From positions 17,112,001 to 17,176,000 of the forward strand of contig CM097888.1 in assembly GCA_044892525.1 (NCBI GenBank): a DNA stretch of 64,000 nt, given 5' to 3'. How positions within the stretch are numbered: position 1 is the first letter of the stretch; each line of letters starts with the position of its first letter. The DNA comes from Schmidtea polychroa. Taxonomy: Eukaryota. Shown piece after piece: positions 5,942-35,600 of this stretch. Below the pieces are notes generated by a model. It saw only the letters and a list, made by a program, of their open reading frames with translations. It was not told where the DNA came from and made no database searches. Position numbers and translations under genes: made by a program.

Positions 5942-6190
5942 CAACCATGACCAACCGGTGGCCCGCGAAGCGTTTTGATGTGGCCCGGACACAATTTTAA
6001 ACATCAAATCAATAATTGTCTTTTGAAGAATTCATATTCGAATTAAGCATGTTTTTAATTTAAAAAATTGATTCTAAGTTTACTTGAATCGTAAAAACGA
6101 GTTATATTTATTTAAATGAATTTATTGTGGCCCCTGATAGTATTTTTCCGAAAATTTGGCCCTTCGATTGATTTGGGTTGGCCACCACTG
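5942..6190. mobile_element. hAT-type MITE, copy 1
   Basis: Imperfect TIRs CAACCATGACCAACC / GGGTTGGCCACCACTG and a perfect 8-bp TSD TTTTAAAT. A near-identical inverted copy lies at 57136-57384. Confidence 0.9.
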
Positions 6191-6701: not shown

Positions 6702-7811
6702 TTAATCATAAGTGTCAGTAGTATTATTAACTCGAATCATAATATTATACAATAGTTCACTGCATTTCGAGGTCAAGGCTTCATTTTCTATGTCATTTTG
6801 AATTCGAAAAATGATGGGCGCTAATCTTTTGCATATATTTCGTCGAATTTGTGGCAAAATCTTTTTTGGTGAGCTCATTATGATTAGGTAATACTTTGAC
6901 AATCGTTCCATATGGTTGAGGAGGCTAGTTAACATTGATCTATTTATCGCTTGTAAATTTGTCAAAATCTGTTTGGAAATTGGTTCTGGAACTGCTTCAT
7001 TTCTGTCAAGTTTACGCAAACTCTTTTGATTGGCAAACGGAATTAGCGGTTGTGGGAGTTCGTTTAATAATAATTGAATTAATCTTTCCAAATTGCCCAC
7101 AGTCCAGTTGGTTTGATTGTTTAAATCGATTGGTAGTTTTTTGATCAACGAATTGAAAATTTCCTCCAACATGTCAACTTCAACTTTTATTTTACTCTTT
7201 TCCTCCGATCTCTTTTTGACGCCCAATTGAAATCGTCTTCGTTCTACTTCGTTTATACAAATATTTAACAAGTCTGACGCAATATTCATATCCAATCCGT
7301 AACGAATGAGCCAGACGTTTTTATCATCTTCTTTCAATGACTGAAATGTCATACTTTTCAATTTTTTATTATTATCTGTCACCTTTAGCACAAACGCATT
7401 ACTGTCTTTGAAGGTGTATGGACAGACATCTTTGGTAAACAATATATTATATGTATCGGTTTGATGTTGTTTATTATCAACTGTAATCATAAGCATTTTC
7501 GATTTTTCATTTTTAATAAAATGAATATCTCTTAATATAACTTCATTACCTTTTATACAATATTGTTTCAAGCTTCCATGTTGGGTCGTATTTACGTTAT
7601 TATCGTAATGGTCTCCAATATTGGATTTGCTCAGTAAAGCTTTATTTGACTTTTTCACATTTTTAAATTTAGAATTGGAATTTGAGTCAACATTGTTTTG
7701 ATTTATGTCGGAACTTTCTAAATTTGTATTTCCTTTATCCGGTTTGAATGATTTAAACAATGTTTTGCCAGTTTTTCTTTGTGATTCGATTTTAACATCT
7801 TTATGTCGCAT
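6702..7811 (-). CDS. 369-aa uninterrupted ORF with a C-terminal divergent RhoGAP-like domain
   Basis: LIQLLLNELPQPLIPF, LQAINRSMLTSLLNHMERL and RLAPIIFR follow the RhoGAP helical signature. The arginine-finger position reads EEIFN. It may be a terminal exon, since an N-block lies just upstream. Confidence 0.65.
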   Translation of the reverse strand: MRHKDVKIESQRKTGKTLFKSFKPDKGNTNLESSDINQNNVDSNSNSKFKNVKKSNKALLSKSNIGDHYDNNVNTTQHGSLKQYCIKGNEVILRDIHFIKNEKSKMLMITVDNKQHQTDTYNILFTKDVCPYTFKDSNAFVLKVTDNNKKLKSMTFQSLKEDDKNVWLIRYGLDMNIASDLLNICINEVERRRFQLGVKKRSEEKSKIKVEVDMLEEIFNSLIKKLPIDLNNQTNWTVGNLERLIQLLLNELPQPLIPFANQKSLRKLDRNEAVPEPISKQILTNLQAINRSMLTSLLNHMERLSKYYLIIMSSPKKILPQIRRNICKRLAPIIFRIQNDIENEALTSKCSELLYNIMIRVNNTTDTYD

Positions 7812-8275
7812 TAGGTCAAATTAATTAATTTATTAATTGATAATATATGTAAAAATGATTAGNNNNNNNNNNNNNNNNNNNNNNNNNNNNNNNNNNNNNN
7901 NNNNNNNNNNNNNNNNNNNNNNNNNNNNNNNNNNNNNNNNNNNNNNNNNNNNNNNNNNNNNNNNNNNNNNNNNNNNNNNNNNNNNNNNNNNNNNNNNNNN
8001 NNNNNNNNNNNNNNNNNNNNNNNNNNNNNNNNNNNNNNNNNNNNNNNNNNNNNNNNNNNNNNNNNNNNNNNNNNNNNNNNNNNNNNNNNNNNNNNNNNNN
8101 NNNNNNNNNNNNNNNNNNNNNCTAAATACATAATTTTCTATGTAACAATTCATGGATATAGAAAAATGGCTTTGTTGGGTTTTGGATTATTTCAAGTCGG
8201 TTCTCTCTGACTCCTGGTGTTCTTTAAATTAAAACAATGAACGACCCAACGTATATTGAAACAACAGGTTCACAA

Positions 8276-8281
8276 TTTATT
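8276..8281 (-). terminator. LTR polyadenylation signal AATAAA
   Basis: AATAAA on the minus strand, about 100 nt before the LTR end. Confidence 0.5.
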
Positions 8282-8553
8282 ATCACGCTACAATTACCAA
8301 TCAAAGTTTTATACGATTCTCCGCTCGGCGTTAATGCTTTGCAAACAAACAGTATTCACCTTTTGATCCTTTAGTTCTGTTGACTCTCGTTTTCCTCGGT
8401 TTCGGTTTGGTTTGATCTCTTTTCGCCTTTCCGTATTCTTAATTCTATTTCTTCTTTTCCCTACTTCCCTAATTCGTTTACCACTTTTCCTACAGTCTAA
8501 TTCTTCGAACCCTAGCTGAGGCAGAATGCCGATTTTCTCTGATTTTCCCTTTG

Positions 8554-8562
8554 CTTATATAC
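8554..8562 (-). promoter_or_regulatory. LTR TATA box (GTATATAAG); 5' LTR equivalent at 36301-36309
   Basis: TATATAA on the minus strand, about 275 nt upstream of an AATAAA at 8281-8276, consistent with a U3-R-U5 layout. Confidence 0.55.
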
Positions 8563-9230
8563 TCCTCGAAATCAGGATGACAAATGGTTATTGCCGAGCC
8601 AATCTTTCGTTTGACATTTTCTCCTACGTGTTTGCTTCGGCTGTCACCCATAATGGTCCAACGAATCCAGATAATTAATGGCCCTACCGGTCTTCCTACG
8701 CGCGCTATCTTCTCCTTACTCTTTTCCCATTAATCATTGTGTCAAACTAATGGGCCCAAATCTTCCTTTTGTTTGCCTTTCTTCTTGTTTACCCAGCTCG
8801 GGTTTCCTTTATCTCTCGGGTTCTCCATTGGCTCGGGTTTCCCATTAGCTCGGGTTTCCCATTAGCCAATTAATTAATTAATTAACGTTTTCTGTTTTCA
8901 TACGTTTGAATATTTTTCGACCCTTCCTAACCCTTTTCTGATAAATCCCTAACCATCATCTTGTTGACCATTAGCTAATCTATACCTGTCCCGTTTTTCC
9001 CATTCGATTTCGATGATTTTTTCATTTATTGATTTTTCTCGGATTTCCGCATTCTCGCCTTTCGTAATTGCTTTTTGCATTTTCTATTACTGTTTCCGTC
9101 ACACTTTCCTTTACTATTGATTCTGTGCACGATCCCGCTTTTATTTGCCTTTTTTCCTCGCTTACTTTCCATTTGAATTATTATCCTAAATTTTATTTAA
9201 ATTTTTAATTTTAATTTACAGACCTCAACA

Positions 9231-9267
9231 TATCTCCCCCCTTAAAAAAATTTTTTCGTCCTCGAAA
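9231..9267 (-). promoter_or_regulatory. Polypurine tract and upstream TTTCGAGGACGAAA motif
   Basis: The minus strand reads TTTCGAGGACGAAAAAATTTTTTTAAGGGGGGAGATA immediately before the TGTTGAG start of the 3' LTR. Confidence 0.9.
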
Positions 9268-11017
9268 TCTATGTTTTGCTGTGACTATGTCCTTGGACGT
9301 AATTTTACATACATTTAATTATTAGATTATACTTTATACTTTTCTAGTTTTCAAATTTTCTGAAATTTCATAGAAATACAAGGCCCAATGGGATGAATTG
9401 GGCAAAAACCTTTGTGAAAAACATTTAAAAACTTGTCCACCATATATAAATATGACAATAATATCTAATTTGAAATAGAATGCGCATTACTGTTGACGAT
9501 TTTATTCCATAACGCAATAGGCTATTGAGAAAAGAAATTATCACTACTCTTTGAACTTTCACTAATGTCAATTTTAATAATCCTACTAAATTACTAATCA
9601 CCTAATATATTAGATACTTCGATAAATAAAAATTTCACATAAATAATTTAGAAATTTATTTTTTTATAAATCAGTATTATGCAGTTAACAACTTAAATAT
9701 TCAAAAATTTATAAATTCATTTCTGTTTTAAACCAATTTAAATGATTTGAATTAGTTTTGTTTAATAAAATAAATTAGCACTTAGATATTTGTTTACGTT
9801 ACTTTTTTGAGAAATTGTTTATCAAATAATATGGATTTTGGTTATTCACTTTCAACAGTCAATGTGGAAACTATTTAAAAATAATTTATATGAACCTGGG
9901 AAATATTTTTGCTGTTATCAGCTAACACAGATAATATCTGCAGTCTCTAATTTAATTTATAAATGAATTAGCTAAAACGATTTCAGATAAAAAAAAATCA
10001 ATTTCATTATTATCTCTAATATTCATTAAGTCCATAAAGACCTTTGTTAGCGATTAACAATTTAATCTTGGCTGATAGTATGAAATGAAAATCATTTCAT
10101 TAAAGACGCTAAGATTTGATTTTGTGTGCCTTCATTTAATTGGCTTATAAGAGATGCTTATAAAATCTGTCTCAGAAATTATTGTCGTGTCTCACACACT
10201 CTCTTCAATTTGATTGGCCATTTGTCAACGGCTGAAAAAGAGAAAATATAGCTTTTTAAAAGCAGGAAATTTCTAGGAAAATTCAATCACTTGATTTTCG
10301 CAAACGAATTTAACGAAAATATATTTATATTTCTTTTTTTTTTTTTTTATATTAGAGTTTGGCTTAAATTTCATTCACACTTATTTATGGTCAACGATTG
10401 GGTTATAAAAACCATGTATGCTACAAAACGTCGAAGAGGAAGCACAAAATGGTTAGATTAATTTTTTTTTTGTATTAATTGTATAAAAATTCGAATTATT
10501 CTCAGTTATTGATTCTCTATCAAAACCGATGATTGATAAGTTGGGGAAAAATCGATATGCATTGACAACATTAAATTATGAGAATTATAGCACAGGTTTG
10601 AAATATATATTTATCTAATCTGTCGATCAAATCTCAGAATTCCGGCTGGTTCAATAAAATAATGAAATTTTTTTCCTTATATTCTGAAATATTTTTAGCA
10701 AATGATTTTTTTTTTTTGGGTTTATTAATTTATATTTTTTAGATTGAAGTAGGTTTATTATTTATTCATTTTATGTAACCATTATATGTGATGTTATGAA
10801 ATATCGGCAATTATAAAGCAATTCAATGATTTGTATAAAATTGTTATTAATCCTGTTATTTATTAGCATGAGGATTTGAGTGGATATAATAATATTTAGG
10901 CATTTGTGTAATGCTTGCAAATTATAATTGGAAATTATTTGAAAATTACCAAAGAATAATAATATTTGCAGTTCCCTGAAATGCTAGATATTTAAATGAG
11001 AAATAAACTTGAAAATT

Positions 11018-11046
11018 GACTACTACTATTATTATTACTCTATCAA

Positions 11047-11095
<49 letters not shown>

Positions 11096-11230
11096 TATTG
11101 TTATAATTATTACTGTTATTACCACTATCATTACCATTATTATTATCAATATTATTATTTTATCAATATTATTATTATTATTATTATTATTATTATCAAT
11201 ATTATTATTATTATTATTATTATTATTTAT
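11018..11230. repeat. (ATT)n microsatellite inside the element's 3' region
   Basis: Long imperfect ATT run; it explains the poly-N/I/L ORFs in the track. Confidence 0.95.
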
Positions 11231-11257
11231 CACAATCCTACTCCAATTATCGCAATT

Positions 11258-11412
11258 ATCGGGACGTCTATTAATTGAGGGAAATAATTTTTATCGGGAC
11301 GTCTATTAATTGAGGGAAATAATTTTTTATCTGGACGTCTATTAGTTGGGGTAAATAATTTTTATCGGGACGTTTATTAAGGGAAATACTTATTATCTGG
11401 ACGTCTATTAAA
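11258..11412. repeat. About 35-bp tandem repeat, 4-5 copies
   Basis: Unit approximately ATCGGGACGTCTATTAATTGAGGGAAATAATTTTT, with no unique spacers. Confidence 0.9.
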
Positions 11413-11667
11413 AATTAATAAATCAAGTAGACTAACGACAGTCTGGTAAGGTTATGGTTATGTGGTGTCATTATTACCATTATTATTAATATTATAATTT
11501 AAAAATAATTTTTGTTATTAATAACTTATTGGTTTATTTCGCTCGCAGCATGGTAAAAAGTTAATCTCCCCCGCACCGACCGACTCATGATATCACTTGT
11601 TTACTCAACCTGATAAGGTATCTGCGATGAACATTAATATTCCGAATGATTTTTTTTTTTGGTTTTT

Positions 11668-11797
11668 GACGTAGCCGATACTGATAGGCTCTATAATTAA
11701 TTACCCTGTGGTTTCTTAACGTAGCCCGTGCTGATAAGCTTTCTAATTAATTACCCTGTGGTTTGTTAACGTAGCCTGTACTGATAAGCGTTCTATA
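11668..11797. repeat. 50-bp tandem repeat, about 2.6 copies
   Basis: CGTAGCC anchors at 11670, 11720 and 11770; shared CTGATA(A/G)GC and TAATTAATTACCCTGTGGTTT. Confidence 0.9.
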
Positions 11798-12355
11798 TAA
11801 GTGTCTGCTTTACCACTTTTCGTTAGTTTTGTCTTGCCAATCTTGAAGTAAGCATTTTATATTTTATTTTTCTTTTTCATATTTTTTTTTTGAATTTTAG
11901 TAACGCCATCCCTCAATTACTATGGACGTAAGTGATTACTTGTCTTTTATTATTTTTTTTTGTTTTTGTGATTCTTTTTACCATGCTGTCCTCAACTATT
12001 AGTAATGCGTTCCCTCATAGCAACCGAACATTTGCAATCGCTGTCCAGGGTAGCCAAACCCCGGTGATTGCAAGTGCTCGTGTTGCTTATTAAATTAACT
12101 TATTGATGCTTATTAAATTAACTTATTTACTTTTTAATTTTAATTCGTTAATTTGTTTATGCAACTACCTATACCACACTCATGTTTTGGGTCATATATT
12201 TTTGATTTTTGATTTTGTATTTATACTAAAAGCAAACCTCTAATTACAGCTACTCGTATTTTTCTGACAATTTTAGCCGTATTTATACTTATTGATTTAT
12301 TACGTAATTCTTAAAATCAATTACTTCCCTGCACTAATTATTTGTCGAGGGCGCC

Positions 12356-12657
12356 ATGGTACGGAGTTTTACATAGTATTTATTTCATTTTCTTTTCAAC
12401 CCTTACTATTTTAGGCTGTCCCAGAACCTAAGTTTGAGCATCTCGATGTTATGCAATGGTTATTTGACTGCCATCCTAACAGGTTTTTTAATTTCTTTTT
12501 CAGGGTCCCTTTGCCACCGGGTCGAAAGGGATTGAAACGTACCTTTGCCTGTGTGGATACAGGCAGTAGGTTTGAAAGACGCCCGCCTTGCAACGTACGC
12601 AGGGAATGGGACTGTGGCATCCAAAGTCCCGTTCTGATGGACTCTGATGACGAATAA
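12356..12657 (+). CDS. Probable spliced antisense gene, join(12356..12358,12415..12657), 81 aa
   Basis: GCCATG followed by a GT donor at 12359, a 56-nt intron with a polypyrimidine tract ending TTTTAG at 12414, then an in-frame, relatively GC-rich exon giving MAVPEPKFEHLDVMQWLFDCHP...MDSDDE*. Confidence 0.55.
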
Positions 12658-13202
12658 AACTTTGAATAAATGTTCAGCATACCTTTGTTTTTAATTTATG
12701 CTAGAAAGGGTGGGGTAGTTGTGTCCCTCTTCGTGAATAGTCTTTGTTACTACTAATGTGAAATTATTCCCTACTTATTTATAATTTTGTTCTCTCGCCC
12801 CAGTGGGTTACCCATTGCTATATAGTTATGCTAATTCATTAATTACTAATCAGCCATTTAATATTATTTATTTCTAATGCTCATTTAAGGTAGTCATTTC
12901 ATTATTTGCAACATTTATTTGAGTTATTCTATTTGCTCGTTTTTCTTTATTATTCATTTATTTAATTTATCACTTTTTTAATTATTTGTTTATATCAATT
13001 TGTTTATTCATTTGATTATTTACTTGGTAATCTACTTATTTTTTATTTAACTATTATCTATCACTGCCAATTATTTCTTTATATCAATTTGTTTATTTAT
13101 TTGATTATTTGTTAATTTACTTATATTTATTTAACTATTATTTTTTTTTTTTTTTCGAGGACGAAAAAACACCAACAGGGTCCGTTTAAATAATTTATTT
13201 TT

Positions 13203-13448
13203 TTAGTCTAATTGATTTATCTCACCATCATCTTGCGATTCCTCTATTTCTTCTACTCTCATTCGAAACATCGCGAAATCGGCTTCGTGTTGAAACAATA
13301 AGATTTCCAAACGGTCCAACCGCCTTTTCAGACGGAAGTTTTCTTCCTCCAAATCTGTTATTCTGCCCTGCATGCTACGAAACTTTTGCTTTAGTTCTTG
13401 CGTACTTGTTTTACACTCTTTGCATGACATCTCCGAGGCTTCTTGCAT
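13203..13448 (-). CDS. 81-aa accessory ORF (CxxC plus coiled coil) downstream of the polyprotein
   Basis: ATG start, SCKEC motif, then a heptad pattern (ITDLEEENFRLKRRLDRLE) and an acidic tail; same strand as gag-pol. Confidence 0.6.
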   Translation of the reverse strand: MQEASEMSCKECKTSTQELKQKFRSMQGRITDLEEENFRLKRRLDRLEILLFQHEADFAMFRMRVEEIEESQDDGEINQLD

Positions 13449-13622
13449 TCTCTGAAATTAAATGATAGTCATTTTTTTGTATCACTCTTTATTCGCAAAG
13501 CATCAACACCTCGCTTCGAATCTCAAACAAATTACACAGTTCATCCTATGGTACTTATAAAACATGCACATTGTTAATATAAATGTAATATATTTTTATA
13601 CACTATTCATGCAGATCACAAT

Positions 13623-16600
13623 TTATAGTCTTGTCTCATAATATGAATATGATGGTGGTTGAAGGATAGTTAGTTGTCTCTCTTTTACACATATCAAGAT
13701 AGTGATGATTATGAAGGTTATTGATAAGATGAGAAAACCTGTTATTAAAATGTAAATGAGATATTCACAATAGTTGACTGTCAAGTCCGAATTTATCATC
13801 ATTAGTTTATTTGAGTTAGGTTTTGTCGTCTCTTGGGTCGGTAATTGAAAAGGCGATGTGGTTGTATCTGATTTTCGTTTCGATTCATTGATTGTCTTGA
13901 CTTCCACGAAAACTGTTTGCCATCTGCCTGGTTCGGTTATCCATCGCTGATATTTAACTGTTAATTCCCATGCTGTCTCTAAATCAGAAGTGTAAAGTGT
14001 AAAAAAATGATTACCGGCATCTAATATAGTCAGGGTTTTTTGTTTGTAGATAATAACAACTCTTTCATCATTTCCTGATTTTCTATATATCGTTACCGGT
14101 CCATTTCCAACACTCAGGGTTATACGATTTGACTCGTCTCTGAGATAGATAGACTGGGTCTCACTCTTAAATCGTGACCATTGGTTTCTTACTACCGTTC
14201 CATTTTCGAGGCATATGTTCTCGTAGTAGTTTGCATTAACTGAATAATTTTGATTCATTTTCAATTTCTCGTAGCGGATAAATGATTTTCGCGAGTTAAG
14301 GGTGTCGACATTTAACCCTTGAAATGTGATTCGCACTTTCACTAAGTCCACTGGCTTCCAATATATATTGATTCTGTTTATCTCTGGCTCTATTTCGATC
14401 AAGTTTCGCATCTCTTTTGTGTGCACTTCTATTGGAATTTGCGTGTACCACTTTGACATGTTCTGTCTCAACAGCCATTGGTATTTGAAATTTGGCTTTA
14501 ACTTTCGTACTGCAAATATATCTTTATCATAGTTCAGTTCTACCACTGTTGCCGTATTGTCTAGTAAATTAATAATTTCTATTTGGTCTGCGATCTCGCA
14601 TTTACAGCTCCATACTATATTTGTTAGAGTGGAATATATATGTATTTTCTCCATTTCTCGGATTTTGTTTACCGCATATGGTAAGTCGATCTTTTTGCCG
14701 CTCGCGACTGTTACTAACATCAGCATTATTGCTACATATAATATCTTATTGATGTAGCTGACTGGTGTTGGATTTTTCGTGAATTTCTGTTTCCATTTTG
14801 TTTGACCTGTTACTTTATTCTGCTTGGATCTTAAGGGGTATCTAGATTCATCTTCCTCTGGCACTAGTTTACATCGATTTGCATGCACAATCATCGGGTT
14901 AGCTTTTTTGCTCCTGAATGGTAATAACTTCAAATTGGTTTCGGTGGCGTCGCACACTTTGTAGGGTCCTTTAAATGGTCTTTGCAATTTAGGCGATAAA
15001 CCTTTGAGAGGTTCCGGTCTGTTCAGATATACTAGATCTCCAATCTTTATGCCATGCGCATGTGCTTTTTTATCGTATGCTTCTTTATATTTCTCTTGGT
15101 TATGCTTTATTGTCAAACCGGCTTTAGTCCATACTGACTGCATTCTTTCTTGCATCAATGCTTTATAATCCGGTATCTCCATATATTGTGAAATTGGTGG
15201 TTGGAATTTGAGATCAATCGGCATATTATTTTTCCTTAAATACATCAAGTAAAAAGGGGTCTCACCTGTACTTTGATTTGCTGCATTTCTGTAGGCAAAT
15301 AGACACGGCTTTATGAAGTCGTCCCAATCTTTCTGTTTTCGGTTCACATATGACGAGATCATATTTATCAGTGTCCCATTAAATCGTTCCACTAATCCAT
15401 CAGTTTGTGGATGATATGGTGACGTATTCAATTTCCAAATTCCAAATAAGTCTGTGATTGATTTAAACATCTCGCTTTGAAAGTTCTTTCCTTGATCAGT
15501 TAACAATTTCTTTGGAGTACCATAGCGAAATATTATGTTTTCCACAAATATTCTAGCAATCGTGTCTGCTTTTTGGTTTGGAATAGCGTATGCTTCTGGC
15601 CATTTGGTAAAATAGTCACAAAAAACAACAATGTATTTGTTTCCTTTTGTTGTTTCCGGTAATGGTCCCAGAATATCCATTGCCGTCATCTCCATTGGTG
15701 CTGCGGGTACTGGCATCGGTTTTAATGGTACTTTAATCTTTTTACCAGTATTTCTGCGGGTGATGCATACTTTGCAACTGTTACACCAATTTTTCACGTC
15801 TTGCTCCATTGTTGGCCAAAAGTATTTCAATTTTAATCTTGATAGCGTCTTGCGCGTTGACAAATGACCTCCCAACGCTCCATCATGATACTGCATCAGT
15901 AATGCGTCTCTGTGCTTGGCTGGTATAATAATTAATGCTTCCCCATTTTTCCAACATTTAAGTATTCCATTATGAATTACATATTTGCTGTTTGCATCTG
16001 TAAGTCGTTTCCAGTCTTGTTCTTTTCTTATTTTGACCGCTTGTTCCATAAATTGTTTTAATTCACTATCGTTTTCCTGATCATTTTGAAGTTCAAACAT
16101 ATCATTAACGATATGAGAGAAATCTTTTATAAATTTTCTGTAATAGCTCGCCAAACCTAAAAATTGTCTAACCTCATCGGCATCTTTTGGTACTGGGTAC
16201 TCTTCCACTTTTTTGATGTTATCTGGATTAGTTTGTAACCCTCGCCGTGATATTATATGTCCTACATAAATCACTTCTGCTTTGCCCCATTCACATTTCG
16301 ATGGTTTGATTTTTAATTTTGCACTTTTGAGCCGTTTAAATACAGTTTCTACATCTTTCAGGTGTTCTTCGAAATCATTTGAAAATATTATTATATCTTC
16401 GATATATACCAATGCATGTCGAATTCCTCGTAACACATAATTCATTCCTCGTTGGAATGTAGCTGGGGCTCCTGTTAATCCAAATGGTAACACATTAAAC
16501 TCATACAGTCCTTTGCCATCCGAGAACGCCGTCTTTCCTCTATCTTCCTCTTTTACTCTAAATTGATTGTACCCTTTGTTTAAATCAATAACTGTGAAAT

Positions 16601-19600
16601 ATCGTGCCTCTCCCATTTGATCGAACATTTCTTGGGGTACCGGAATTGGATAAGTGTCTTTCCTCGTAACTTGATTTAGCTTCCTATAATCTACGCAAAA
16701 TCGTAAGTCTCCATCCTTTTTCTTAACTATCACTATTGATGAGGAGAATGGTGACGCACTATCTCGAATTATTCCAAATTCCTTCATTGCTGTAATCTGT
16801 CTATCACTTTCATCTTGATGAACGTAGGGGATTCTGTATGGCTTTATTTTTATTGGAGTTTCGTCTAATAACGGTATTTCATGCTCAATTACATTGGTTA
16901 GACCTAAATCATATTCGTGTTTGGCAAAGATATCTCGGTATTTTCTCAACAGTTTTGTGAATTCCTTTTTCTGCATCTCATTTAAATCATTGCTTACCAC
17001 TTCAGGCTCCTTGTACACCTTGACGTTTCTTGGTATTTTACAATTTGTTTCAATAGACATTTTTGATAATTTTCCCAATTTTGTTTTTGGGTGTAACTGA
17101 ACCGGTTTCTTACTGCTATTCGTTATATGGACTGGTACTATCTGATTTTCCACTTTGACAATTTCGTCACATATCGGTAAATCATATTTTTCGACTAGCG
17201 TTTGATTTGGTTCGAATATAAAATCACCATTATCCACACTCATAGTATTTGCACAATACACCATCTCCGATTGTGGTGGTATTGTCAATGTCTGATTCAC
17301 AAACACTTCACCTGCCCCGTGAATTATTTCTCCTGTTTCTCCTGCTATCAAATTACCTGTCTTTAAATCAAGTGAGACTCCGTCCAGCTGCTCTAATATA
17401 TCCATGCCGATCAAACATCGTACTGGACTTCCCTTCATTATGAGCGCATCGTGCGCTATTATTCGATCTCCAATATGGAATATGACATTAAGTTGTCCGA
17501 TTATGTTTAATTCATTTTTTGATAATGACCTCACTATTTCGTCGGTAGGCTTTATTCGCATTTTTTCCTTCGCGTTTAATACATTTTCCGATATTATTGT
17601 GTGACTAGATCCCGAATCGACTAAAGCTTTCACTTTATGTTTGTTCATTTGTATAAATATTCGGGGTTGCTTTCCTCTTTTTGTTAATGTCATCATTGAG
17701 TAGTTGCATGGTAAGCCTAACATATTTTTTCTCTCGATCTCTGCGCTAGAAGGCTCGATTCTCTCTCCCACCATTCCTTCACATTGTAATGCGATATTTT
17801 CTACTGGTTTCATCTCTCGTAATCGATCAACTGGATACACTGGTGCTGGTTGCATAAATGATTTTGGTATACACAATTTTGTAAACGTGTCTACGCTACT
17901 CGCATTCAACAGTGGCTCTTTTAAGATTTGATAGGTTCTTAACGCTTCTTTATTCATTCCACTTAGTTCTTGATTGTCAACATATAACGGTGCACTATCA
18001 CCCTCGTTGTCATTGTCATTGTTCTCGTCCCTTGAAGGGGTAGTACTAGCGTAGCTCACCTTTTTCTTCTTTAATATTCGCGCCTTGAGTATCTCCAACT
18101 CCTGATATTGATGATGAGTAATGAAGAATCTAGCCAATAATGGTATGCACCCAATTACTAGTTTCCACGACCAACCTGTGATCGCGTATAATCTGTGTGT
18201 TGATAGGACCTGCGATATTATTACTTTAATTACAACACATATTACATAAATTCCAATCAATCCGGCACACGCTTGTCCAATGAACATAAACTTTCCCCAG
18301 ATCTTTTTCATTGTATTATACGTCGCTTTCTTGTAATGATCTGGAGTTAACAAATACTCGTAATTTACCTTCCCACTTCCGCTTGGGAGAATTGTATCTA
18401 CCATTTCCATTATTACTCTCTCTTTCTTTGATGGAAATAACAAGTTTCTGCGAGCTTCCTCAATGTCTTCGCTCGAGTAAATTCCACTTTGCGACAATTT
18501 TTCCAACGACGTAAAATTTACCAGATATTGTAATTCTGTCAATTCTAAGTTTTCCGGTGTCTTTACTTCTCGATGATCTGGTAATGCAATCCAAGATTCT
18601 GGTGTTAGTCTGTATAGTGGTGCCAACAATCTATTGCATTGTAATACTTTCGGTTTCACGTCCTCTTCTAGTAAGATTCGTGTTACAGGCTCCATAAATC
18701 GCAACTTTCCATTTAAATTCACTGGTAACTCGTTGGTGCATTGGTCATACTTTGTCAGTTTAACTGGTACCGCTTTACATTTATAGCTATATAGTGCTTC
18801 ACCGAAAATTCTGGCAAACACCCCATTTTCTGTAATTAACATTGGTGCTACCAAATTAGGATTGGTTATAGCCATTGCCATCCGATTTCGGAGTATTTCT
18901 TTGTTGAGATTGCAATCATTTATAATAACTTCTCGGTACACATTTTCAACAGTATTTTGACCAAAGTGAAATAAATAATCTATTTTGTTAGTAAAGTAAT
19001 TTGTCAACTTGATATCTCCGGCATGTATGTTTGTTTGGGCCTCTGAAATCATTTTCTGAGATACGTATATACCTTTATAATTTGTCTCATAGACACTTTG
19101 TCCACACTTTGTTTTAGTTTCTTTTCTCAGGAATCGCATCCCATCTTCCTCCGAGGTTGACATTAACACTGTTGGAGTATCTTTCATCCGTAGAGGTGTG
19201 ATTCTTGTTGTTGTACTCGTTGCTGGATCCATTCTTATTTTCTCAGGCTTTTCCCTGATCTGTTCTCCCGTTATTTCTTTAAAACTCATTGACTTCAATT
19301 GCACTATATTGCACTTTTTGGTATCGACATCGTACACCAAGATTGATTCTCCTGTCTGACAGCTAGATTGTTTCATGTTGCAGAATGGATGTGTTTGTAG
19401 TTTACCAGTATCATCATCAAATGATCCATCAAATTCTCTTAATTCTGACATGTACTCTTCTACAACCACGGCTTTATCAATTATAGCATCGTCTACTTTG
19501 TATGGCTCTCCTTGGCAATCACCATTCGACTTTATTATCCCTCGCACGGTTACAGTCTCACGGATTTTGTGGTTAAGCTTTGCCTGTAGTTTGATATCTG

Positions 19601-20621
19601 CATTGATTTTCAACTGTCCTGTTTGAAAGGCTGCCAAACAATTCTCTGGAATTATTTCTATCGGTCTAGGTATCGATTGCATTTTCACCATCGATGAGTG
19701 GCTCCATTTTCCACAATAAAATACAAAAGTAGTTCGTTTCACTGTACACTCTCTCACCTTTGCTCGTCGAAACCCCGATTCTTGGTATACATAATATTTT
19801 ACTGGATTTGTCACTTTAAATTTTACTGGATATGCATCCGAACACTCTGCTACGTTTACCAACGAATATACTCTTCCCATTTCGGTTTGGGAGCAGTCGT
19901 ATGCCACCAATGAATTTGTCGTGTTTATTATTCCTAATAACATAATAATAGAAATCATCAACCATGGAAATGCGAGTTTTCCCTTTTTCCTCACTGTCTC
20001 TGTTTTTGGGCTCTCAGCCTTTTGTATCAACTTTTCCCATCCGCCATTGTTTGCGATCCACTTCATCAAATATTTATTCGTCATTTCAGTAGCTTTCTTT
20101 ATCAATGATTTTGAATTGTCACTTTCCAGACAACCATAAATACCAATCTCCAATATTATATAGGCTAGCACTGTCAATATTACATCTCGATCCAACTCGG
20201 TTCGTGTTAGGTCCTCAATTACTGCTTCCTCACAAAATTCCTTTTCTTCATAATTTCTTTTAATTATCGACGGTAATCTCCTCTTTAATTCCATTGCCAA
20301 TCTTTTTACAACTCTTTTCTCCCCCTCCGAAGTATCATCTTCGGTTTCAGTTTCATCTAACAAGTACAATTCCGTTACTAAACTTTTTAATATTCGCTCT
20401 GTTTCGCTTGATTCATCTAAACTCAAAGATCCAATTTCCACATCACTCTGTTTTATCCCACATATCGCAATGTCATTTTTCGTCTCAACAAAGTTCTCTT
20501 CACTTTTCATCTCATCTATGCTCGGTAGTATCCTATTATCGGTGCTCATTTCCTCAACGTCCCTTGTAACTTCATTTTCCGATGTCATTTCCTCATTTTC
20601 CATTGTTTCTAATCTCGGCAA
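13623..20621 (-). CDS. pol: Polyprotein: Bcl-2-like / chuvirus-like glycoprotein / protease / RT / integrase / FN3-like membrane protein (2332 aa from an alternative start; frame open from 20684)
   Basis: WIANNGGW (BH2-like); AYDC...FYCG...CTNELPV (chuvirus G-like); LVDSGS (protease); PYRIP, LRFCVDYRKLN, PFGL, YIEDII (RT); H-H-CxxC, D-D-E and GPY (integrase); C-terminal transmembrane helix. Confidence 0.95.
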   Translation of the reverse strand: MPRLETMENEEMTSENEVTRDVEEMSTDNRILPSIDEMKSEENFVETKNDIAICGIKQSDVEIGSLSLDESSETERILKSLVTELYLLDETETEDDTSEGEKRVVKRLAMELKRRLPSIIKRNYEEKEFCEEAVIEDLTRTELDRDVILTVLAYIILEIGIYGCLESDNSKSLIKKATEMTNKYLMKWIANNGGWEKLIQKAESPKTETVRKKGKLAFPWLMISIIMLLGIINTTNSLVAYDCSQTEMGRVYSLVNVAECSDAYPVKFKVTNPVKYYVYQESGFRRAKVRECTVKRTTFVFYCGKWSHSSMVKMQSIPRPIEIIPENCLAAFQTGQLKINADIKLQAKLNHKIRETVTVRGIIKSNGDCQGEPYKVDDAIIDKAVVVEEYMSELREFDGSFDDDTGKLQTHPFCNMKQSSCQTGESILVYDVDTKKCNIVQLKSMSFKEITGEQIREKPEKIRMDPATSTTTRITPLRMKDTPTVLMSTSEEDGMRFLRKETKTKCGQSVYETNYKGIYVSQKMISEAQTNIHAGDIKLTNYFTNKIDYLFHFGQNTVENVYREVIINDCNLNKEILRNRMAMAITNPNLVAPMLITENGVFARIFGEALYSYKCKAVPVKLTKYDQCTNELPVNLNGKLRFMEPVTRILLEEDVKPKVLQCNRLLAPLYRLTPESWIALPDHREVKTPENLELTELQYLVNFTSLEKLSQSGIYSSEDIEEARRNLLFPSKKERVIMEMVDTILPSGSGKVNYEYLLTPDHYKKATYNTMKKIWGKFMFIGQACAGLIGIYVICVVIKVIISQVLSTHRLYAITGWSWKLVIGCIPLLARFFITHHQYQELEILKARILKKKKVSYASTTPSRDENNDNDNEGDSAPLYVDNQELSGMNKEALRTYQILKEPLLNASSVDTFTKLCIPKSFMQPAPVYPVDRLREMKPVENIALQCEGMVGERIEPSSAEIERKNMLGLPCNYSMMTLTKRGKQPRIFIQMNKHKVKALVDSGSSHTIISENVLNAKEKMRIKPTDEIVRSLSKNELNIIGQLNVIFHIGDRIIAHDALIMKGSPVRCLIGMDILEQLDGVSLDLKTGNLIAGETGEIIHGAGEVFVNQTLTIPPQSEMVYCANTMSVDNGDFIFEPNQTLVEKYDLPICDEIVKVENQIVPVHITNSSKKPVQLHPKTKLGKLSKMSIETNCKIPRNVKVYKEPEVVSNDLNEMQKKEFTKLLRKYRDIFAKHEYDLGLTNVIEHEIPLLDETPIKIKPYRIPYVHQDESDRQITAMKEFGIIRDSASPFSSSIVIVKKKDGDLRFCVDYRKLNQVTRKDTYPIPVPQEMFDQMGEARYFTVIDLNKGYNQFRVKEEDRGKTAFSDGKGLYEFNVLPFGLTGAPATFQRGMNYVLRGIRHALVYIEDIIIFSNDFEEHLKDVETVFKRLKSAKLKIKPSKCEWGKAEVIYVGHIISRRGLQTNPDNIKKVEEYPVPKDADEVRQFLGLASYYRKFIKDFSHIVNDMFELQNDQENDSELKQFMEQAVKIRKEQDWKRLTDANSKYVIHNGILKCWKNGEALIIIPAKHRDALLMQYHDGALGGHLSTRKTLSRLKLKYFWPTMEQDVKNWCNSCKVCITRRNTGKKIKVPLKPMPVPAAPMEMTAMDILGPLPETTKGNKYIVVFCDYFTKWPEAYAIPNQKADTIARIFVENIIFRYGTPKKLLTDQGKNFQSEMFKSITDLFGIWKLNTSPYHPQTDGLVERFNGTLINMISSYVNRKQKDWDDFIKPCLFAYRNAANQSTGETPFYLMYLRKNNMPIDLKFQPPISQYMEIPDYKALMQERMQSVWTKAGLTIKHNQEKYKEAYDKKAHAHGIKIGDLVYLNRPEPLKGLSPKLQRPFKGPYKVCDATETNLKLLPFRSKKANPMIVHANRCKLVPEEDESRYPLRSKQNKVTGQTKWKQKFTKNPTPVSYINKILYVAIMLMLVTVASGKKIDLPYAVNKIREMEKIHIYSTLTNIVWSCKCEIADQIEIINLLDNTATVVELNYDKDIFAVRKLKPNFKYQWLLRQNMSKWYTQIPIEVHTKEMRNLIEIEPEINRINIYWKPVDLVKVRITFQGLNVDTLNSRKSFIRYEKLKMNQNYSVNANYYENICLENGTVVRNQWSRFKSETQSIYLRDESNRITLSVGNGPVTIYRKSGNDERVVIIYKQKTLTILDAGNHFFTLYTSDLETAWELTVKYQRWITEPGRWQTVFVEVKTINESKRKSDTTTSPFQLPTQETTKPNSNKLMMINSDLTVNYCEYLIYILITGFLILSITFIIITILICVKERQLTILQPPSYSYYETRL

Positions 20622-20656
20622 TTCATTAATTTCTCGATCAATTTCTACTGGGTCAT

Positions 20657-29909: not shown

Positions 29910-31190
29910 CTACAACTTCAGTTTTGTTGCGTACACATTATTAATACAATTTGGGTTACATCCGTAGTTTAACAAATATTCATCATCATCTAATTCTCGT
30001 CCTTCGAACGTCAACACGATAATTCCTTCATTACCTAATATTTCCGCTGCTTTTTGTCGTATTTTCTTTGCTTTTACACTCCAATGTTCCTGACAATATT
30101 CAATCCTTTGATCCGAAATATTTAACGCTATTATCAAAGATTTCGCACTATTGTCTGCCGCCTCATAATCATGTCCTAGTTTTCGGATTACCTCTTTTAA
30201 CTTTGCCTGATAACTCGTCGGTTTATTCGTATACGGTACGATGCATTCAAACAACCTTTCTTTCATGTCTCGATCCATTTCGATGCTCATTATGAAGTCG
30301 ATACTCGCATTAATTTTATCACTATTCCCTACATACAGGGTATCTTGTAAATCTGCTAGAATCTTTTCCCAATTTTGTCTGTCTGAATTCAAAGTATTAA
30401 CAGCATTAACAACATTTACTTTATTTTTCCAGCCTGGTATCAGACCGCAATCTACCAAGTACTCCTCGTCTTCCAGACATCGATTCTCAAATTTTAATTG
30501 CACTTGCCATCCACTGTATTGACGCAGTATTCGCTCCTTTAGCTCTCTGATTTGTCCGTAGGCATTTACACGGAATTGGCACTTCACATTATCAAGTCCC
30601 GTCGTTTCCACTATGATATCAGCTAAATCCCTTGTTGACCGTAAAGCCTTGCCAAACTTTTGCATTTGTTTAAGTATCTCATCGTCTCTGTTTCCTTTGA
30701 ATAACTTTGCACATAAATTTATGGCTCTCTTTAGCTCGCTTTGGGTTAGTGACATCACACTGAGTTCTGCGATCCATCGTTTCAACTGGGAGTTGTCAGT
30801 TTCCATTTTCTCAAGCCATTTTTCAACTCGGGCTAACAGTGCAGTCGGATTCTCATCTGATGCGATCTTTCGCACTTTCGTGGCAGGTTTTCCCTCACCT
30901 TCTGACACGGTTCCAATTATCATATGAGATTCAGTTTCCTCATCTGATTCAAATTTAGCCACTAATTTGTTCAGCTTCTGTCGCATTTCTCGAAATTCCT
31001 TTTCCATTTTGTCTTGAAATTCCTCTCTCCGAGCATATGTCATATTGCTGGTGTTTGGCATATCTTCTTGGAATCTGATTGATTTCTTTAAAATAGGTCT
31101 GCTGAATCTTTCTGAGTTCCTTGGGCATGATCGCGCCATGTGGCCGTATCCCTTGCACGAATGACATTGGATCTGTCCATTTGTATTCAC
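29910..31190 (-). CDS. Duplicate of the zinc-knuckle/Ubl-Ubl ORF
   Basis: Same translation as 20657-21937. Confidence 0.85.
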   Translation of the reverse strand: MNTNGQIQCHSCKGYGHMARSCPRNSERFSRPILKKSIRFQEDMPNTSNMTYARREEFQDKMEKEFREMRQKLNKLVAKFESDEETESHMIIGTVSEGEGKPATKVRKIASDENPTALLARVEKWLEKMETDNSQLKRWIAELSVMSLTQSELKRAINLCAKLFKGNRDDEILKQMQKFGKALRSTRDLADIIVETTGLDNVKCQFRVNAYGQIRELKERILRQYSGWQVQLKFENRCLEDEEYLVDCGLIPGWKNKVNVVNAVNTLNSDRQNWEKILADLQDTLYVGNSDKINASIDFIMSIEMDRDMKERLFECIVPYTNKPTSYQAKLKEVIRKLGHDYEAADNSAKSLIIALNISDQRIEYCQEHWSVKAKKIRQKAAEILGNEGIIVLTFEGRELDDDEYLLNYGCNPNCINNVYATKLKL

Positions 31191-31247
31191 TTTGTCCCTT
31201 TGTGGTGAAGGTGACGTTGACGATGATCTTGATTATTTGGTTATTGA

Positions 31248-31985
31248 TTATTTTGGTCTCAAAATTGGACTACTGATTTGATTTATTTTCTTTTCATCCC
31301 ATGGTGCTCTCACAGGCGTAATTGATCGCTCACGTCTCTCCACATTAACTCCAAAAGCATCTGATCTTTTTGCACTTTTTAAATTCAGCTCTATCTTCAT
31401 GGCTTTCTTCACGAGCTCATCGAAATTGGAAAAATCCACATAACATAGGGCCTTTTTGATTTCGGAGTGGACTCCGGTTATAAACTGATCTTCTAACAGC
31501 TCTTTAACCTGCTTGGCCATATCTGCTTGATCTGGTTTAACTTCAAAGGCTTTATCTGCTAAAGTGGTCAGATGATAAGCAAACTCACTGACCGATTCAT
31601 CTGGACCTTGAACTCGATTATAAAATTTCTGTCGCATGATTCTTTTGATATCTCCACCAACCAGTTTCAGTGCCATTGCATCCTTCAATTTTGTCCAATC
31701 ATTGCCAACATTTCGTTTGTCGACTTGCTGCCAGGCTTCTCTTGCCGCACCCTTCAGATAGAGTGGGAATCTCTGAACCATAATGGCTTGCGTCCATCCG
31801 TATGCTGAGGCGTACATATAATAATCTCCCATGAAATCTGCAAATTCAACAGGGTCTCCTCCATATTGATTGACGGGTAATTTCTGGCAACTTGCAAAAT
31901 CAATCATCTCTCTATTGAGAGGCATAACAGCATTATCATTTGCCATTTGGACTTGTTTCTGACTTCTGAGGTTGTATCGGTTCAC
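31248..31985 (-). CDS. gag: Duplicate gag capsid ORF
   Basis: Same translation as 21995-22732. Confidence 0.9.
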   Translation of the reverse strand: MNRYNLRSQKQVQMANDNAVMPLNREMIDFASCQKLPVNQYGGDPVEFADFMGDYYMYASAYGWTQAIMVQRFPLYLKGAAREAWQQVDKRNVGNDWTKLKDAMALKLVGGDIKRIMRQKFYNRVQGPDESVSEFAYHLTTLADKAFEVKPDQADMAKQVKELLEDQFITGVHSEIKKALCYVDFSNFDELVKKAMKIELNLKSAKRSDAFGVNVERRERSITPVRAPWDEKKINQISSPILRPK

Positions 31986-32291
31986 TTTGAGCTAAACTTC
32001 AAACGTTAAACAATAATTTAAAATTACTTTTCAACTTCTTTTAAATCTCCCAATAATAGCCTTTTATATCTCGTTAGCACTAGTTTCACAAATTTTCACT
32101 ACTTTCAATGATTCTCAGCCGACTCTCTATCGCGTCGGTACTAATTCTTTTTATAATTCCTTTTTCACTAGCTTCCAATAATTTTCCTCCGACTTCCTAT
32201 CACGTCGGTACTAATTCTTCAATAAAATTTTTCCACTGACTTTCAATAATTTTCCGCCGACTTCGAATCACGTCGGGCTCACCAGAATATA

Positions 32292-32616
32292 TGTTGGGTT
32301 TTGGATTATTTCAAGTCGGTTCTCTCTGACTCCTGGTGTTCTTTAAATTAAAACAATGAACGACCCACCGTATATTGAAACAACAGGTTCACAATTTATT
32401 ATCATGCTACAATTACCAATCAAAGTTTTATACGATTCTCCGCTCGGCGTTAATGCTTTGCAAACAAACAATATTCACCTTTTGATCCTTTAGTTCTGTT
32501 GACTCTCGTTTTCCTCGGTTTCGGTTTGGTTTGATCTCTTTTCGCCTTTCCGTATTCTTAATTCTATTTCTTCTTTTCCCTACTTCCCTAATTCGTTTAC
32601 CACTTTTCCTACAGTC
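32292..32616 (-). repeat. 5' LTR, R/U5 part (split from U3 by the nested insertion)
   Basis: Matches 8173-8497 and abuts the PBS. Confidence 0.95.
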
Positions 32617-35600
32617 TGTTGGTGTATGTGGGGGAGAGAGAAAAATACTTTACGCATTTCCATCACACCCCTCAAGCATCATTATTCCGTTAGATATTTC
32701 CCACACATACTCCAGATGATCGCTTGCATATTCCCACATATGAGCCCGTGATGATGTTCCACGTTGGTGCTGCTCATACGGGTCGGGAAGAGTTAGCAGG
32801 TGAGCCCCTGCCTTAGGACTACTCCTAACCCTTTCTCGGTTCGGGTTCTACGGTGCCTTAGAAGGACTTACCCACATTCATGCATATCACTCGGTCTGAT
32901 CCCGGTCCAAGGGAACGACCTGCAATCCTGATTACTTTCATTTCACATCCTCCTGCTAGTCACTCCAATTACACAATCATTCGTTTTGAAAATTTACCAC
33001 AACGAAATTAAACAAAATATATTGAAGCCATAAACAAAATTACACCCAACAGTTACTAAATTAACAGAATCTAAACCAGTTGCAAATGCACACGGCTGTC
33101 AGTTTTTTCGAAAATACAAAAAAAATCTTGCTACGCTCTTCCTTCATCTGTGGCGGGGAGAACCACGTCCCTTCATAGAGGTCTATTCGTTTTTTGAGAG
33201 CCCCGATATACAAGTGGAGTTGAGCAATATCCGCGTTCTTGTCAGCACAAGAAAAACACGGGCGAAGTTCTTTGGCATTGTTGGACGGTGTAGTCATCTA
33301 GAAATCCAATCACCTGTTAAGTCTATCCGAAGTATTTATTAATATGATATAGTCAATTTTGGACATGGGTCTGGAGTTTTATCAAACATCCCGCACACCG
33401 GTAACCCACAGACCTCCTCATCCATCTCTATTCACAGTCATTCAGTTGCAAGCATTCCAATCTCTTCACCTAATTCATGTAAATTAAGAAAAGGAAACGG
33501 GGGATTTACGCACACAATCCTCCCTATCTAAACCTCACCCTTTGGAGTTACTTCCGGATGGGACACTCCCCATACAAAACTCGTCCTTCCCTTTATTCCC
33601 TTCAACCTTGTTCCCCTTAGTATATCTTTATTCAAAAAATCTTTCCGGTATCCTTATGGCAATCCGTCGATGTAGGCGTACATAAAATTACAGAAAAATA
33701 ATTCACGGCGACTGAATAGATTATTTATGTTTTTTATCTCGCTCAAAATTACAAAATTAATCAATAATCAGTCAACAATTTAGTTCTAAATTTAAATCTA
33801 ATTAATTCAAATAACGCGTCGTACTCGTCGTCATGGAGACGTTTACTTGTAGTTATGAAATATGATTGAATATTTAGGTGTGTCGATACTCCTGGTTGCA
33901 TCTGCAACTGTGTGTTGGCTATCACCGCGAATGATTATTTATGTTGTTAGGAGAGATTATTAGATGTCGAGTTGCGTGGAGGAAATCGATTCCTTTACTC
34001 CAGCCTACTATCTCGCTGCTCTGGAAAATTCATATTATCATGTCATTATTACATCATCAAAAGTCGTAGATTTATTTTTTACACTGCCTTATGTAGACTT
34101 GACTGGGGTGTGCGTGTGTACGTGCATTTCCAAGTCGGAATAATATGGATTGTACAAGATATTCCTCAACCAAGCAGCAGCCGTAGACAGATGGGGAAAA
34201 TCAGACTAATCAATCTGAGTAGGTGGCAACTCAGTAGATTACTGAGTAAGCTTGATTTTATTATCTAACTCCTTTTCACGATATTGATTCAGGTCAACGA
34301 CTATCAACTTATTCGTTTGGCGATTTCACCAGAAAAACCGATACGTTATCTCTCCCTCCAAAACATTATCAGCTAATTCTCGTCGGCTAACTCTAAGCTG
34401 GCTAATATAAATCGACGAATTCTGTTATCGTTGGCAACTATTTCCATTGAGCTCAAAGTGAGTGTTTTGATAATGTCATTGCAAGATGTTTACTTCCCTG
34501 TCAGCGAGAGATGGTTTATCACTGGCATCGGCGATTCAAGGACGACAGTTCAATTTTAAGAGTACATCGATGATGGATGTAGTCGCTAGCGTCCTGGCGG
34601 CACAAATCAAATAGAACCTCGAAAAATGCAGTATGTTACAGAAAAATCGTTGGAGTTGCTCGCAATCTATGGTCAACAACGTTCTTTCCTAACTACGTCG
34701 ACCGACAGGCTGGATATCATGAAAAATTTCTTCTATCCATGTGGATTCTTATCAAATCAGTATGAACGTCAATGCCAATCTCGATCTGAATTGTCCTCAT
34801 TTGGAATTTAAATCATCTTTACAACTATTGGAAAGCTCGGTGTGGCTAAATGAAACGATGGCGTGCTCTCTAAACGATCGCGCTCGATGAAGGAAATTTT
34901 ACTTCCAAACTGGATTTTCACCCTACTGAGTTTCTTCACCCCTCATGACACACCCAAGAAGGCATTCATTTCTGCCACCGTCTTGCACCGTCATGAGGGA
35001 CCAATCAACTCATCTCCATTCAATTAAATCAACCATTTGTACAAAATTTATATAATGATCAAAATGAATGATAGGTAAATGAATAAATAAAATTTACCCG
35101 GCGACCATATCATTTGGACTCCAAGTATGATGTTACTCATTCTACACAATCGAGACCTCATCGTCTCCTTGGTGGATCTCTAATATGACAAATATCATTC
35201 TCTGCAAGGATTACATTCTCATTTTCAGCATGTTCATGATTTCTTATGCATACCAACCTTTCCACTGTGGTGTCCTCTACTGCAGTACAATTCCAACTCG
35301 CCCACATCATACTGGGAGCTCTCAGATGGTACAGTCGCCGGCACCATGAAGAAAAGGCCATTTGTATTTAAATAAATTTATTGCATGAAATTGTTTTTAT
35401 TATATTTATAACAATTAACTAAATTAAACTAACAACCATAAATAAAGCAACTGTCGAGACATACCTCAAGTTTCGAAAACTGGAGTAAATCGGTTGAATT
35501 TAGAATTTGTCCTTAATGGATTTCTAGTTTGGTCTCTATATATTCCTTCCTAGATTCGGTTTCGTAGTCTCTGAACTAGTTCGCTGTAGGATAATTTAGT

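Follow-up and report, generated by a model that had tools for sequence, protein, structure and literature searches.

A stretch of 64,000 nucleotides from the planarian Schmidtea polychroa (assembly GCA_044892525.1, contig CM097888.1, positions 17,112,001 to 17,176,000; hereafter the window) carries a long terminal repeat (LTR) retroelement in which a helical domain of some 130 residues stands directly ahead of a viral-type fusion glycoprotein. We favour, with moderate confidence, the reading that this region encodes a diverged Bcl-2-family-like helical domain forming the cytosolic N-terminal leader of the envelope protein (Env) in a Burro-like, gypsy/Ty3-type retrovirus-like element. Homologues of Bcl-2 are a familiar feature of large DNA viruses; to our knowledge, retroelements carrying one have been the subject only of brief published notes on the planarian element Burro. 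Should the domain indeed regulate cell death, the cell that produces a reverse-transcribing element would be protected by it, a matter of special relevance in planarians, given the central place of stem-cell survival and DNA-damage responses in these animals. Its fixed fusion to the envelope signal sequence would in that case also constitute a functional Env leader peptide of a new kind.

The Bcl-2-like domain and its motif

Positions are numbered from the first letter of the window, and 'minus' denotes its minus strand. Translation of the minus strand over 20022-20408 yields 129 amino acids without stops, corresponding to residues 72-200 of the third open reading frame (ORF3) of the element. 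The three peptides singled out in a first-pass annotation of this DNA, described there as a BH2-like motif (BH, Bcl-2 homology), a helix at the BH3 position and a central hydrophobic helix, are all found in this translation. The coordinates given there were correct; the coding strand is the minus one, since the plus strand across the interval contains many stop codons. The helical domain itself extends over residues 72-203 (20013-20408, minus; second copy 29266-29661) and comprises the helix at the BH3 position (residues 104-116), the central hydrophobic helix (residues 145-167; 20121-20189, minus) and the BH2-like motif (residues 188-198; 20028-20060, minus; second copy 29281-29313). It is preceded by an acidic N-terminal leader (residues 1-71; 20409-20621, minus) holding 20 Asp and Glu against 6 Lys and Arg. 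From its N-terminus, ORF3 is thus ordered as acidic leader, helical domain, short basic linker, hydrophobic segment of about 20 residues, class III glycoprotein of mononegavirus/chuvirus type with a transmembrane segment of its own, and finally protease (PR), reverse transcriptase (RT) and integrase (IN). The domain had been placed inside the polyprotein; it does lie within an Env-Pol fusion ORF, and its position is more exactly that of an N-terminal leader, presumably cytosolic, of the envelope glycoprotein part.

Residues W188, G194 and W195 of the BH2-like motif are invariant across the family of four sequences described below and align with the BH2 of Bcl-2 and Bcl-xL. In the six frames of the window, the loose pattern W-x5-G-W occurs at two sites only, which are the two copies of the domain. 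Block shuffles that keep the composition give a chance expectation of 0.23 per window for this pattern, and the strict pattern W-x3-[ND]-G-G-W was met in 0 of 100 shuffles. Taken alone, the motif is not significant genome-wide: across an entire genome, many chance occurrences would be expected. With the loose motif expected 0.23 times per window, the case depends on its context and on profile searches rather than on the motif.

Sequence evidence for Bcl-2 ancestry

Within the domain region, the sole Pfam match is Bcl-2 itself (PF00452; 15.1-15.7 bits, E-value 0.023-0.035), and the same Pfam family is matched independently by three of the four family sequences. When the window protein was compared with all PDB sequences by phmmer, each of the 38 matches belonged to the Bcl-2 family (best E-value 0.033), with alignments covering the central hydrophobic helix through BH2. 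An exhaustive phmmer search of 1.84 billion representative proteins recovered just three proteins related to the N-terminal region, with identities of 29-32%, all of which share the same layout of helical domain, hydrophobic segment and beginning of the same glycoprotein. One of them, P0001, when searched alone against the PDB, finds Bcl-xL first (E-value 0.056) through an alignment running from the BH1 position across BH2 into the transmembrane tail; the N-terminus of another, P0003 from contig L001, finds a BCL-2 chain first (E-value 0.25). The window protein and two relatives, which are only 22-29% identical among themselves, therefore each have the Bcl-2 family as first PDB match.

A profile of the four sequences trimmed to the domain improved the best E-value against the PDB from 0.033 to 0.0029 and gave 102 matches, of which the 60 listed were all Bcl-2 family members, including chains labelled BCL-2 protein, SJCHGC06286 protein, Bcl-2 homolog and 5-HL. 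An earlier profile (A1), which held the whole of a 1,582-residue relative, had brought no gain in E-value, the gain being obtained upon trimming to the domain. Columns invariant in the family hold a Tyr within the central helix, a Lys and, in the BH2-like motif, W, G and W; they include the positions that define BH2. An E-value that improves from single sequence to profile, together with a single family among the matches, is the pattern expected of true remote homology. We regard descent of the domain from the Bcl-2 family as likely, on evidence that is weak but consistent.

Other searches widened the family little. A word search of a large database, in which the complete polyprotein served as query and residues 1-240 were scored, gave no match; a search with the N-terminus and glycoprotein returned one chimeric UniParc protein only; a word search with the profile returned only P0003 and a chuvirus-like glycoprotein (G); and pattern scans over metagenome and viral contigs gave no match.

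Predicted structure and points against the reading

The first-pass annotation had proposed structure prediction followed by Foldseek as a check, and this did not give a significant result. For an AlphaFold model built from the alignment, nearly all of the top 50 PDB matches in Foldseek are BAK, Bcl-2, Bcl-xL, Mcl-1 or BAX, aligned over 130-147 columns. In the viral library BFVD, an adintovirus Bcl2 comes first, followed by several Bcl-2-like proteins of herpesviruses and iridoviruses, none of them significant. A model built from the single sequence was set aside, as it is a smooth helical bundle similar to designed repeats and likely idealised.

Several observations weigh against the reading proposed here. 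The alignment-based model is of low confidence (predicted local distance difference test, pLDDT, 49.8; predicted template modelling score, pTM, 0.39), and its PDB matches reach at best an E-value of 0.11 and a probability of 0.87, with TM-scores of 0.33-0.47, none significant. Because the Foldseek score includes amino-acid identity, these matches to the Bcl-2 fold are not independent of the sequence match. For the single-sequence model (pLDDT 67, pTM 0.63), the matches were to designed helical repeat proteins, none of them significant. At the sequence level, the domain does not reach the PF00452 gathering threshold of 31.4 bits, and the E-values of single sequences, all between 0.03 and 0.25, pass no conventional threshold; the profile is shallow, with four family members only. 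The similarity to Bcl-2 is confined to about 50-80 residues (helices 5-8). At the BH1 position, the window copy reads L-D-R-D and its relatives N-R-D-K or D-S-K, which is only a partial echo of NWGR; the first-pass annotation had rightly described NWGR as not conserved, and it is absent from the window copy. No BH3 or BH4 signature was seen, and an alignment of the helix at the BH3 position with a BH3 was returned by none of the PDB searches with the window protein, P0001 or the profile. Finally, since this copy of the element has a defective look, the domain may go unexpressed at this locus. The Bcl-2 identity originally suggested for the domain is supported in part, at a weak to moderate level, in that Bcl-2 is the only family in Pfam, the top PDB match for the window protein and two relatives, and the source of a profile E-value of 0.003, with an invariant W/G/W and a tail anchor; it falls short in that no curated threshold is reached.

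The envelope glycoprotein and the membrane segment

A hydrophobic segment (residues 214-235; 19917-19982, minus) starts 19 residues beyond W195, with RKKGK ahead of it. It leads into a class III viral fusion glycoprotein (17697-19916, minus), with an ectodomain from about residue 241 and a cytoplasmic tail ending at about residue 975, which matches Pfam PF24664 (Monjiviricetes_fusion) with an E-value of about 1e-92 to 4e-92 and is encoded in the same ORF as PR, RT and IN. Its own transmembrane segment lies at residues 778-808 (18198-18290, minus). The glycoprotein begins with the motif [YF]DC, five residues past the hydrophobic segment, and in all four family sequences this start is preceded by Ala at -1 and Ile or Leu at -3; a candidate cut lies between this conserved Ala and [YF]DC (residues 240/241). 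A tblastn search with the glycoprotein against phage records gave no match.

The module formed by Bcl-2-like domain, transmembrane segment and glycoprotein is conserved and collinear among relatives that are 22-36% identical. Collinearity between the window protein and P0003 extends from the Bcl-2-like domain to the end of the glycoprotein, with 36% identity over 832 residues, which indicates that the fusion is old and has been maintained. In a chuvirus-like exogenous G (P0004, contig L002), a signal peptide stands at the extreme N-terminus and the mature part begins in the same FDCS/YDCS register, so the Bcl-2-like domain is an addition, made in the retroelement lineage, ahead of the envelope signal sequence. 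Contig L002 itself (Logan SRR17030301, 11.6 kb) is organised as in a chuvirus-like RNA virus, with a 2,160-aa ORF cut by the contig start, a 692-aa G (PF24664) that is a distant relative of the glycoprotein of the element, and two further ORFs.

Proposed mechanism and alternative explanations

The arrangement suggests a possible topology. The hydrophobic segment would do duty as Bcl-2-type tail anchor and glycoprotein signal-anchor alike, and would insert so that its N-terminus faces the cytosol. Cleavage by signal peptidase between the conserved Ala and [YF]DC would then yield a tail-anchored Bcl-2-like protein in the membrane of the endoplasmic reticulum (ER) and a normal type I glycoprotein, whose transmembrane segment at residues 778-808 would bring the chain back to the cytosol, the place of PR, RT and IN. 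The freed domain would damp the mitochondrial or ER cell-death response of the host in the cell expressing the element. The proposed topology is self-consistent, and the double use of the anchor with cleavage is plausible, though somewhat less likely than not. An anti-death function, suggested by family resemblance and by the death- and ubiquitin-related domains of published relatives, is plausible while falling short of probable; the captured apoptosis regulator protecting the cell that the first-pass annotation envisaged is likewise plausible. More tentatively still, the tail anchor of the Bcl-2-like domain may double as the Env signal sequence, in which case one translation and one cut would yield a death regulator and a fusion glycoprotein in a fixed 1:1 ratio.

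The same domain might derive from Bcl-2 and yet serve another purpose, as an Env leader peptide that contacts Gag or the capsid, retains or regulates the glycoprotein in the ER, or perturbs membranes. Long functional Env leader peptides occur in foamy viruses, and the signal peptide of mouse mammary tumour virus and the stable signal peptide of arenaviruses provide further analogies. Such a role would account for a domain that is always fused directly ahead of the glycoprotein signal-anchor, that does not keep the BH1 arginine position in the window copy, in which no BH3 signature was found, and whose conserved residues are few, two of them tryptophans. We nevertheless judge it unlikely, because a full-length helical domain with a tail anchor has been retained, as fits ordinary Bcl-2 action, and because the BIR, MATH/TRAF and ubiquitin-like domains of Burro point to manipulation of host death pathways (Arkhipova and Yushenova 2019, PMC6431247). 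A resemblance arising by chance would require a lineage-specific amphipathic helical leader of the glycoprotein in which W-x5-G-W and the hydrophobic segment mimic BH2 and a tail anchor. Every match does lie below curated and conventional thresholds, the loose motif has the chance level given above for 64 kb, and the single-sequence model shows no Bcl-2 fold. Against this stand the three sequences of 22-29% identity that each find the Bcl-2 family first, the tenfold better E-value of the profile with only Bcl-2 family members among the 60 listed of its 102 matches, and the coincidence of the positions conserved in the family of four with those conserved in Bcl-2 proteins. BCL2-like motifs were moreover noted independently by other authors in Burro-2, -3 and -4, as related in PMC6431247. 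Chance is, in view of these agreements, decidedly unlikely.

It is also conceivable that the domain is genuine and inert at this locus, the Bcl-2-like coding sequence being a passenger in a defective, rearranged element. No RNase H is detectable between RT and IN, gag is interrupted by one in-frame stop between its capsid-like and zinc-knuckle parts, and the element has suffered an internal 9.25-kb duplication and a nested insertion into its 5' LTR. The insertion is recent, however, as judged from LTRs that are 99.7% identical and an ORF open over 2,332 codons; the domain is intact in both copies, and defects in pol are no bar to expressing an N-terminal domain. We consider this explanation very improbable and retain the Bcl-2-like Env leader as the preferred reading of the region.

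Coding regions of the element

ORF1 (245 aa; 21995-22732, minus; second copy 31248-31985) encodes a gag capsid-like protein (Pfam Retrotrans_gag, E-value 8e-10). ORF2 (426 aa; 20657-21937, minus; second copy 29910-31190) follows in the same frame after one stop and combines a CCHC zinc knuckle (zf-CCHC, E-value 0.002) with a ubiquitin-like domain (E-value 3.7e-5; 23.8 bits against a cut-off of 25.4), both just below their cut-offs. By eye, a second ubiquitin-like domain is apparent in ORF2, beyond the one assigned by Pfam to residues 193-252; it ends at the ORF2 stop, directly upstream of ORF3. ORF3 (2,332 aa; 13623-20621, minus), which runs from the acidic leader through the Bcl-2-like domain, transmembrane segment, class III glycoprotein, PR, RT and IN to a C-terminal extension, is shifted to the -1 frame with respect to ORF2, the two overlapping by about 25 nt. 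No canonical frameshift signal was established in this overlap; as a distant relative changes frame at the same junction, the frame change between ORF2 and ORF3 may be natural. The upstream copy of ORF3 (2,052 aa; 23716-29874, minus) is cut short by the duplication junction.

The pol part comprises an aspartic protease (17379-17672, minus; Pfam RVP and gag-asp_proteas), a reverse transcriptase (16251-16727, minus; RVT_1, E-value 4e-31) and an integrase with zinc-binding domain and catalytic core (15408-15926, minus; Integrase_H2C2, E-value 8e-20; rve, E-value 2e-11). A dUTPase was looked for between PR and RT and not detected. Between RT and IN, Pfam detected no RNase H in the roughly 108 residues available (15927-16250, minus), an apparent single in-frame loss; the pol on the contig of P0001 does contain RT_RNaseH domains.

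The integrase is followed by a C-terminal extension of 470 aa (13626-15050, minus), composed of a signal-like hydrophobic stretch, about 400 residues and a strong terminal transmembrane segment (residues 2285-2315). It contains four N-x-S/T sites and six Cys, and no homologue was found in Pfam or the PDB. From these sequence features, the extension looks like a second membrane glycoprotein.

Structure of the insertion

The whole element spans 28,805 nt (8173-36977, minus) and has on either side AAGC, its 4-bp target-site duplication (8169-8172 and 36978-36981), as established by self-BLAST and inspection of the ends. GC content is raised over 12-37 kb of the window. The 3' LTR (8173-9230, minus) measures 1,058 nt, has TG...CA ends and follows a polypurine tract at 9231-9243. 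The 5' LTR is in two pieces: its first 737 nt (36241-36977, minus) are 100% identical to the 3' LTR, and its last 326 nt (32292-32617, minus) carry 3 mismatches to it, the latter piece recurring at 23039-23364 in the duplicated unit. The 737-nt repeats were initially candidates for complete LTRs; this was rejected, because the ends reveal one 1,058-nt LTR split by a nested insertion. With 3 differences over 1,058 nt (99.7% identity) between the LTR copies and 2,332 open codons, the insertion of the element appears recent.

The nested insertion (3.6 kb; 32618-36240, minus) has TG...CA ends, is flanked by a GACT duplication of 4-5 bp and contains no ORF longer than 100 aa. Its termini resemble those of the main LTR, with a TGTTG start and a CAACA end, so it may be the solo LTR of a related giant family. 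A putative primer-binding site (PBS; 32263-32284, minus) begins with TGG, 7 nt past the LTR, the call being based on position and the TGG start only. Just downstream of the putative PBS, a 68-nt tandem repeat of 2.7 copies is found at 22840-23023 and 32093-32276, with a PBS-like core in each unit.

Two units of 9,253 nt (14478-23730 and 23731-32983, minus) form a tandem duplication with 3 mismatches, each unit carrying gag, ORF2 and most of ORF3. The second copy of the domain, which had been reported at 29275-29661, is indeed identical to the first; it stems from this tandem duplication inside one element and does not represent a second element. At the duplication junction, the post-integrase extension of ORF3 is joined to the interior of the nested insertion, with microhomology of at most 3 nt. 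Either a real rearrangement or an error of assembly could account for the duplication. The end of ORF3 is separated from the polypurine tract by 4.4 kb of AT-rich sequence without long ORFs (9244-13622), which includes 35/71-nt and 50-nt tandem repeats at 11027-11795 and a (TAT)n run.

The element is flanked by host-like ORFs, one with a RhoGAP domain (6702-7811, minus) and one diverged and 14-3-3-like (38727-39398, plus strand); the public gene index lists neither as an exact product. A perfect 266-nt inverted repeat (41855-42120 and 42303-42568, arms 182 nt apart) and a 273-nt inverted pair of 96% identity (5919-6190 and 57136-57408, 51 kb apart) are probably other mobile elements.

Comparison with known systems

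The element shows the hallmarks of LTR retroelements: TG...CA LTRs, a target-site duplication, a polypurine tract, a putative PBS, and Pfam matches to PR, RVT_1 and integrase. Among these, its closest counterpart is Burro, the giant gypsy-like LTR retroelements described in Schmidtea mediterranea together with a Dugesia relative (Arkhipova and Yushenova 2019, PMC6431247). Burro elements exceed 30 kb and contain a single ORF of 4,873 aa with MATH/TRAF, BIR, ankyrin, dUTPase and ubiquitin-like domains; their env, which matches mononegavirus fusion glycoproteins, lies in frame between BCL2 and PR, and a Ubi/SUMO-like domain precedes BCL2 (PMC6431247). A BCL2-like motif in Burro-2, -3 and -4 was noted by Grohme et al. 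(2018), as cited in PMC6431247. The window element has the same order of gag, CCHC, ubiquitin/SUMO-like domain, BCL2-like domain, in-frame env, PR, RT and IN. It is likewise large, at 28.8 kb, but only through its duplication and nested insert. Its flanks are 70-78% A/T, comparable to the Burro-rich S. mediterranea genome with more than 70% A/T (PMC11410931). It differs from Burro-1 in having about 3,000 codons in three ORFs rather than one ORF of 4,873 aa, in the extra membrane-protein-like extension after IN, and in that no MATH/TRAF, BIR, ankyrin, dUTPase or RNase H was detected in the window copy. An ankyrin ORF, as in Burro, is present in the related element on contig L001 (ENA ERZ25039515, 14.8 kb), where a 949-aa gag-CCHC ORF is followed by the 1,582-aa ORF and then by the ankyrin-repeat ORF. 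The 1,582-aa ORF includes the Bcl-2-like domain, the glycoprotein and protease-family Pfam matches, in another frame than gag and overlapping it. The window element is at most a further member of the Burro kind, assigned by architecture and composition and not by direct comparison with Burro sequences. Since its domain order matches that of Burro (PMC6431247), a Bcl-2-like domain at this position was already known, as a motif annotation; literature searches for Bcl-2 homologues in retroelements yielded nothing further.

The domain resembles the cellular Bcl-2 family (PF00452) in its BH2-like W-x5-G-W, its central hydrophobic helix, its seven to eight or so helices and a hydrophobic tail about 20 residues past BH2, and the alignments keep register between the BH1 position and the tail. 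Unlike cellular members, it scores below the Pfam cut-off, lacks NWGR and any visible BH3 or BH4 signature, and is fused to a viral glycoprotein. The Bcl-2 homologues of herpes-, irido-, asfar- and adintoviruses are, like it, virus-borne and highly diverged, and appear among its weak fold and profile matches; they are stand-alone genes of DNA viruses, whereas the window domain belongs to a retroelement polyprotein and would share its anchor with the envelope signal.

GAG-ENV-POL elements of errantivirus type, which occur in Nematoda, Bryozoa and Platyhelminthes, carry a class III (gB/G-type) env between gag and pol, and their ectodomain sometimes lies between two transmembrane segments rather than between a signal peptide and one such segment (Chary and Hayashi, PMC13524379). 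The window element also has a class III env between gag and pol; it differs in its Bcl-2-like domain, the words 'Bcl-2' and 'apopto' having 0 occurrences in PMC13524379. While a Bcl-2-like domain ahead of a retroelement envelope has thus a precedent in Burro, the reading of its tail anchor as the signal of Env may be new.

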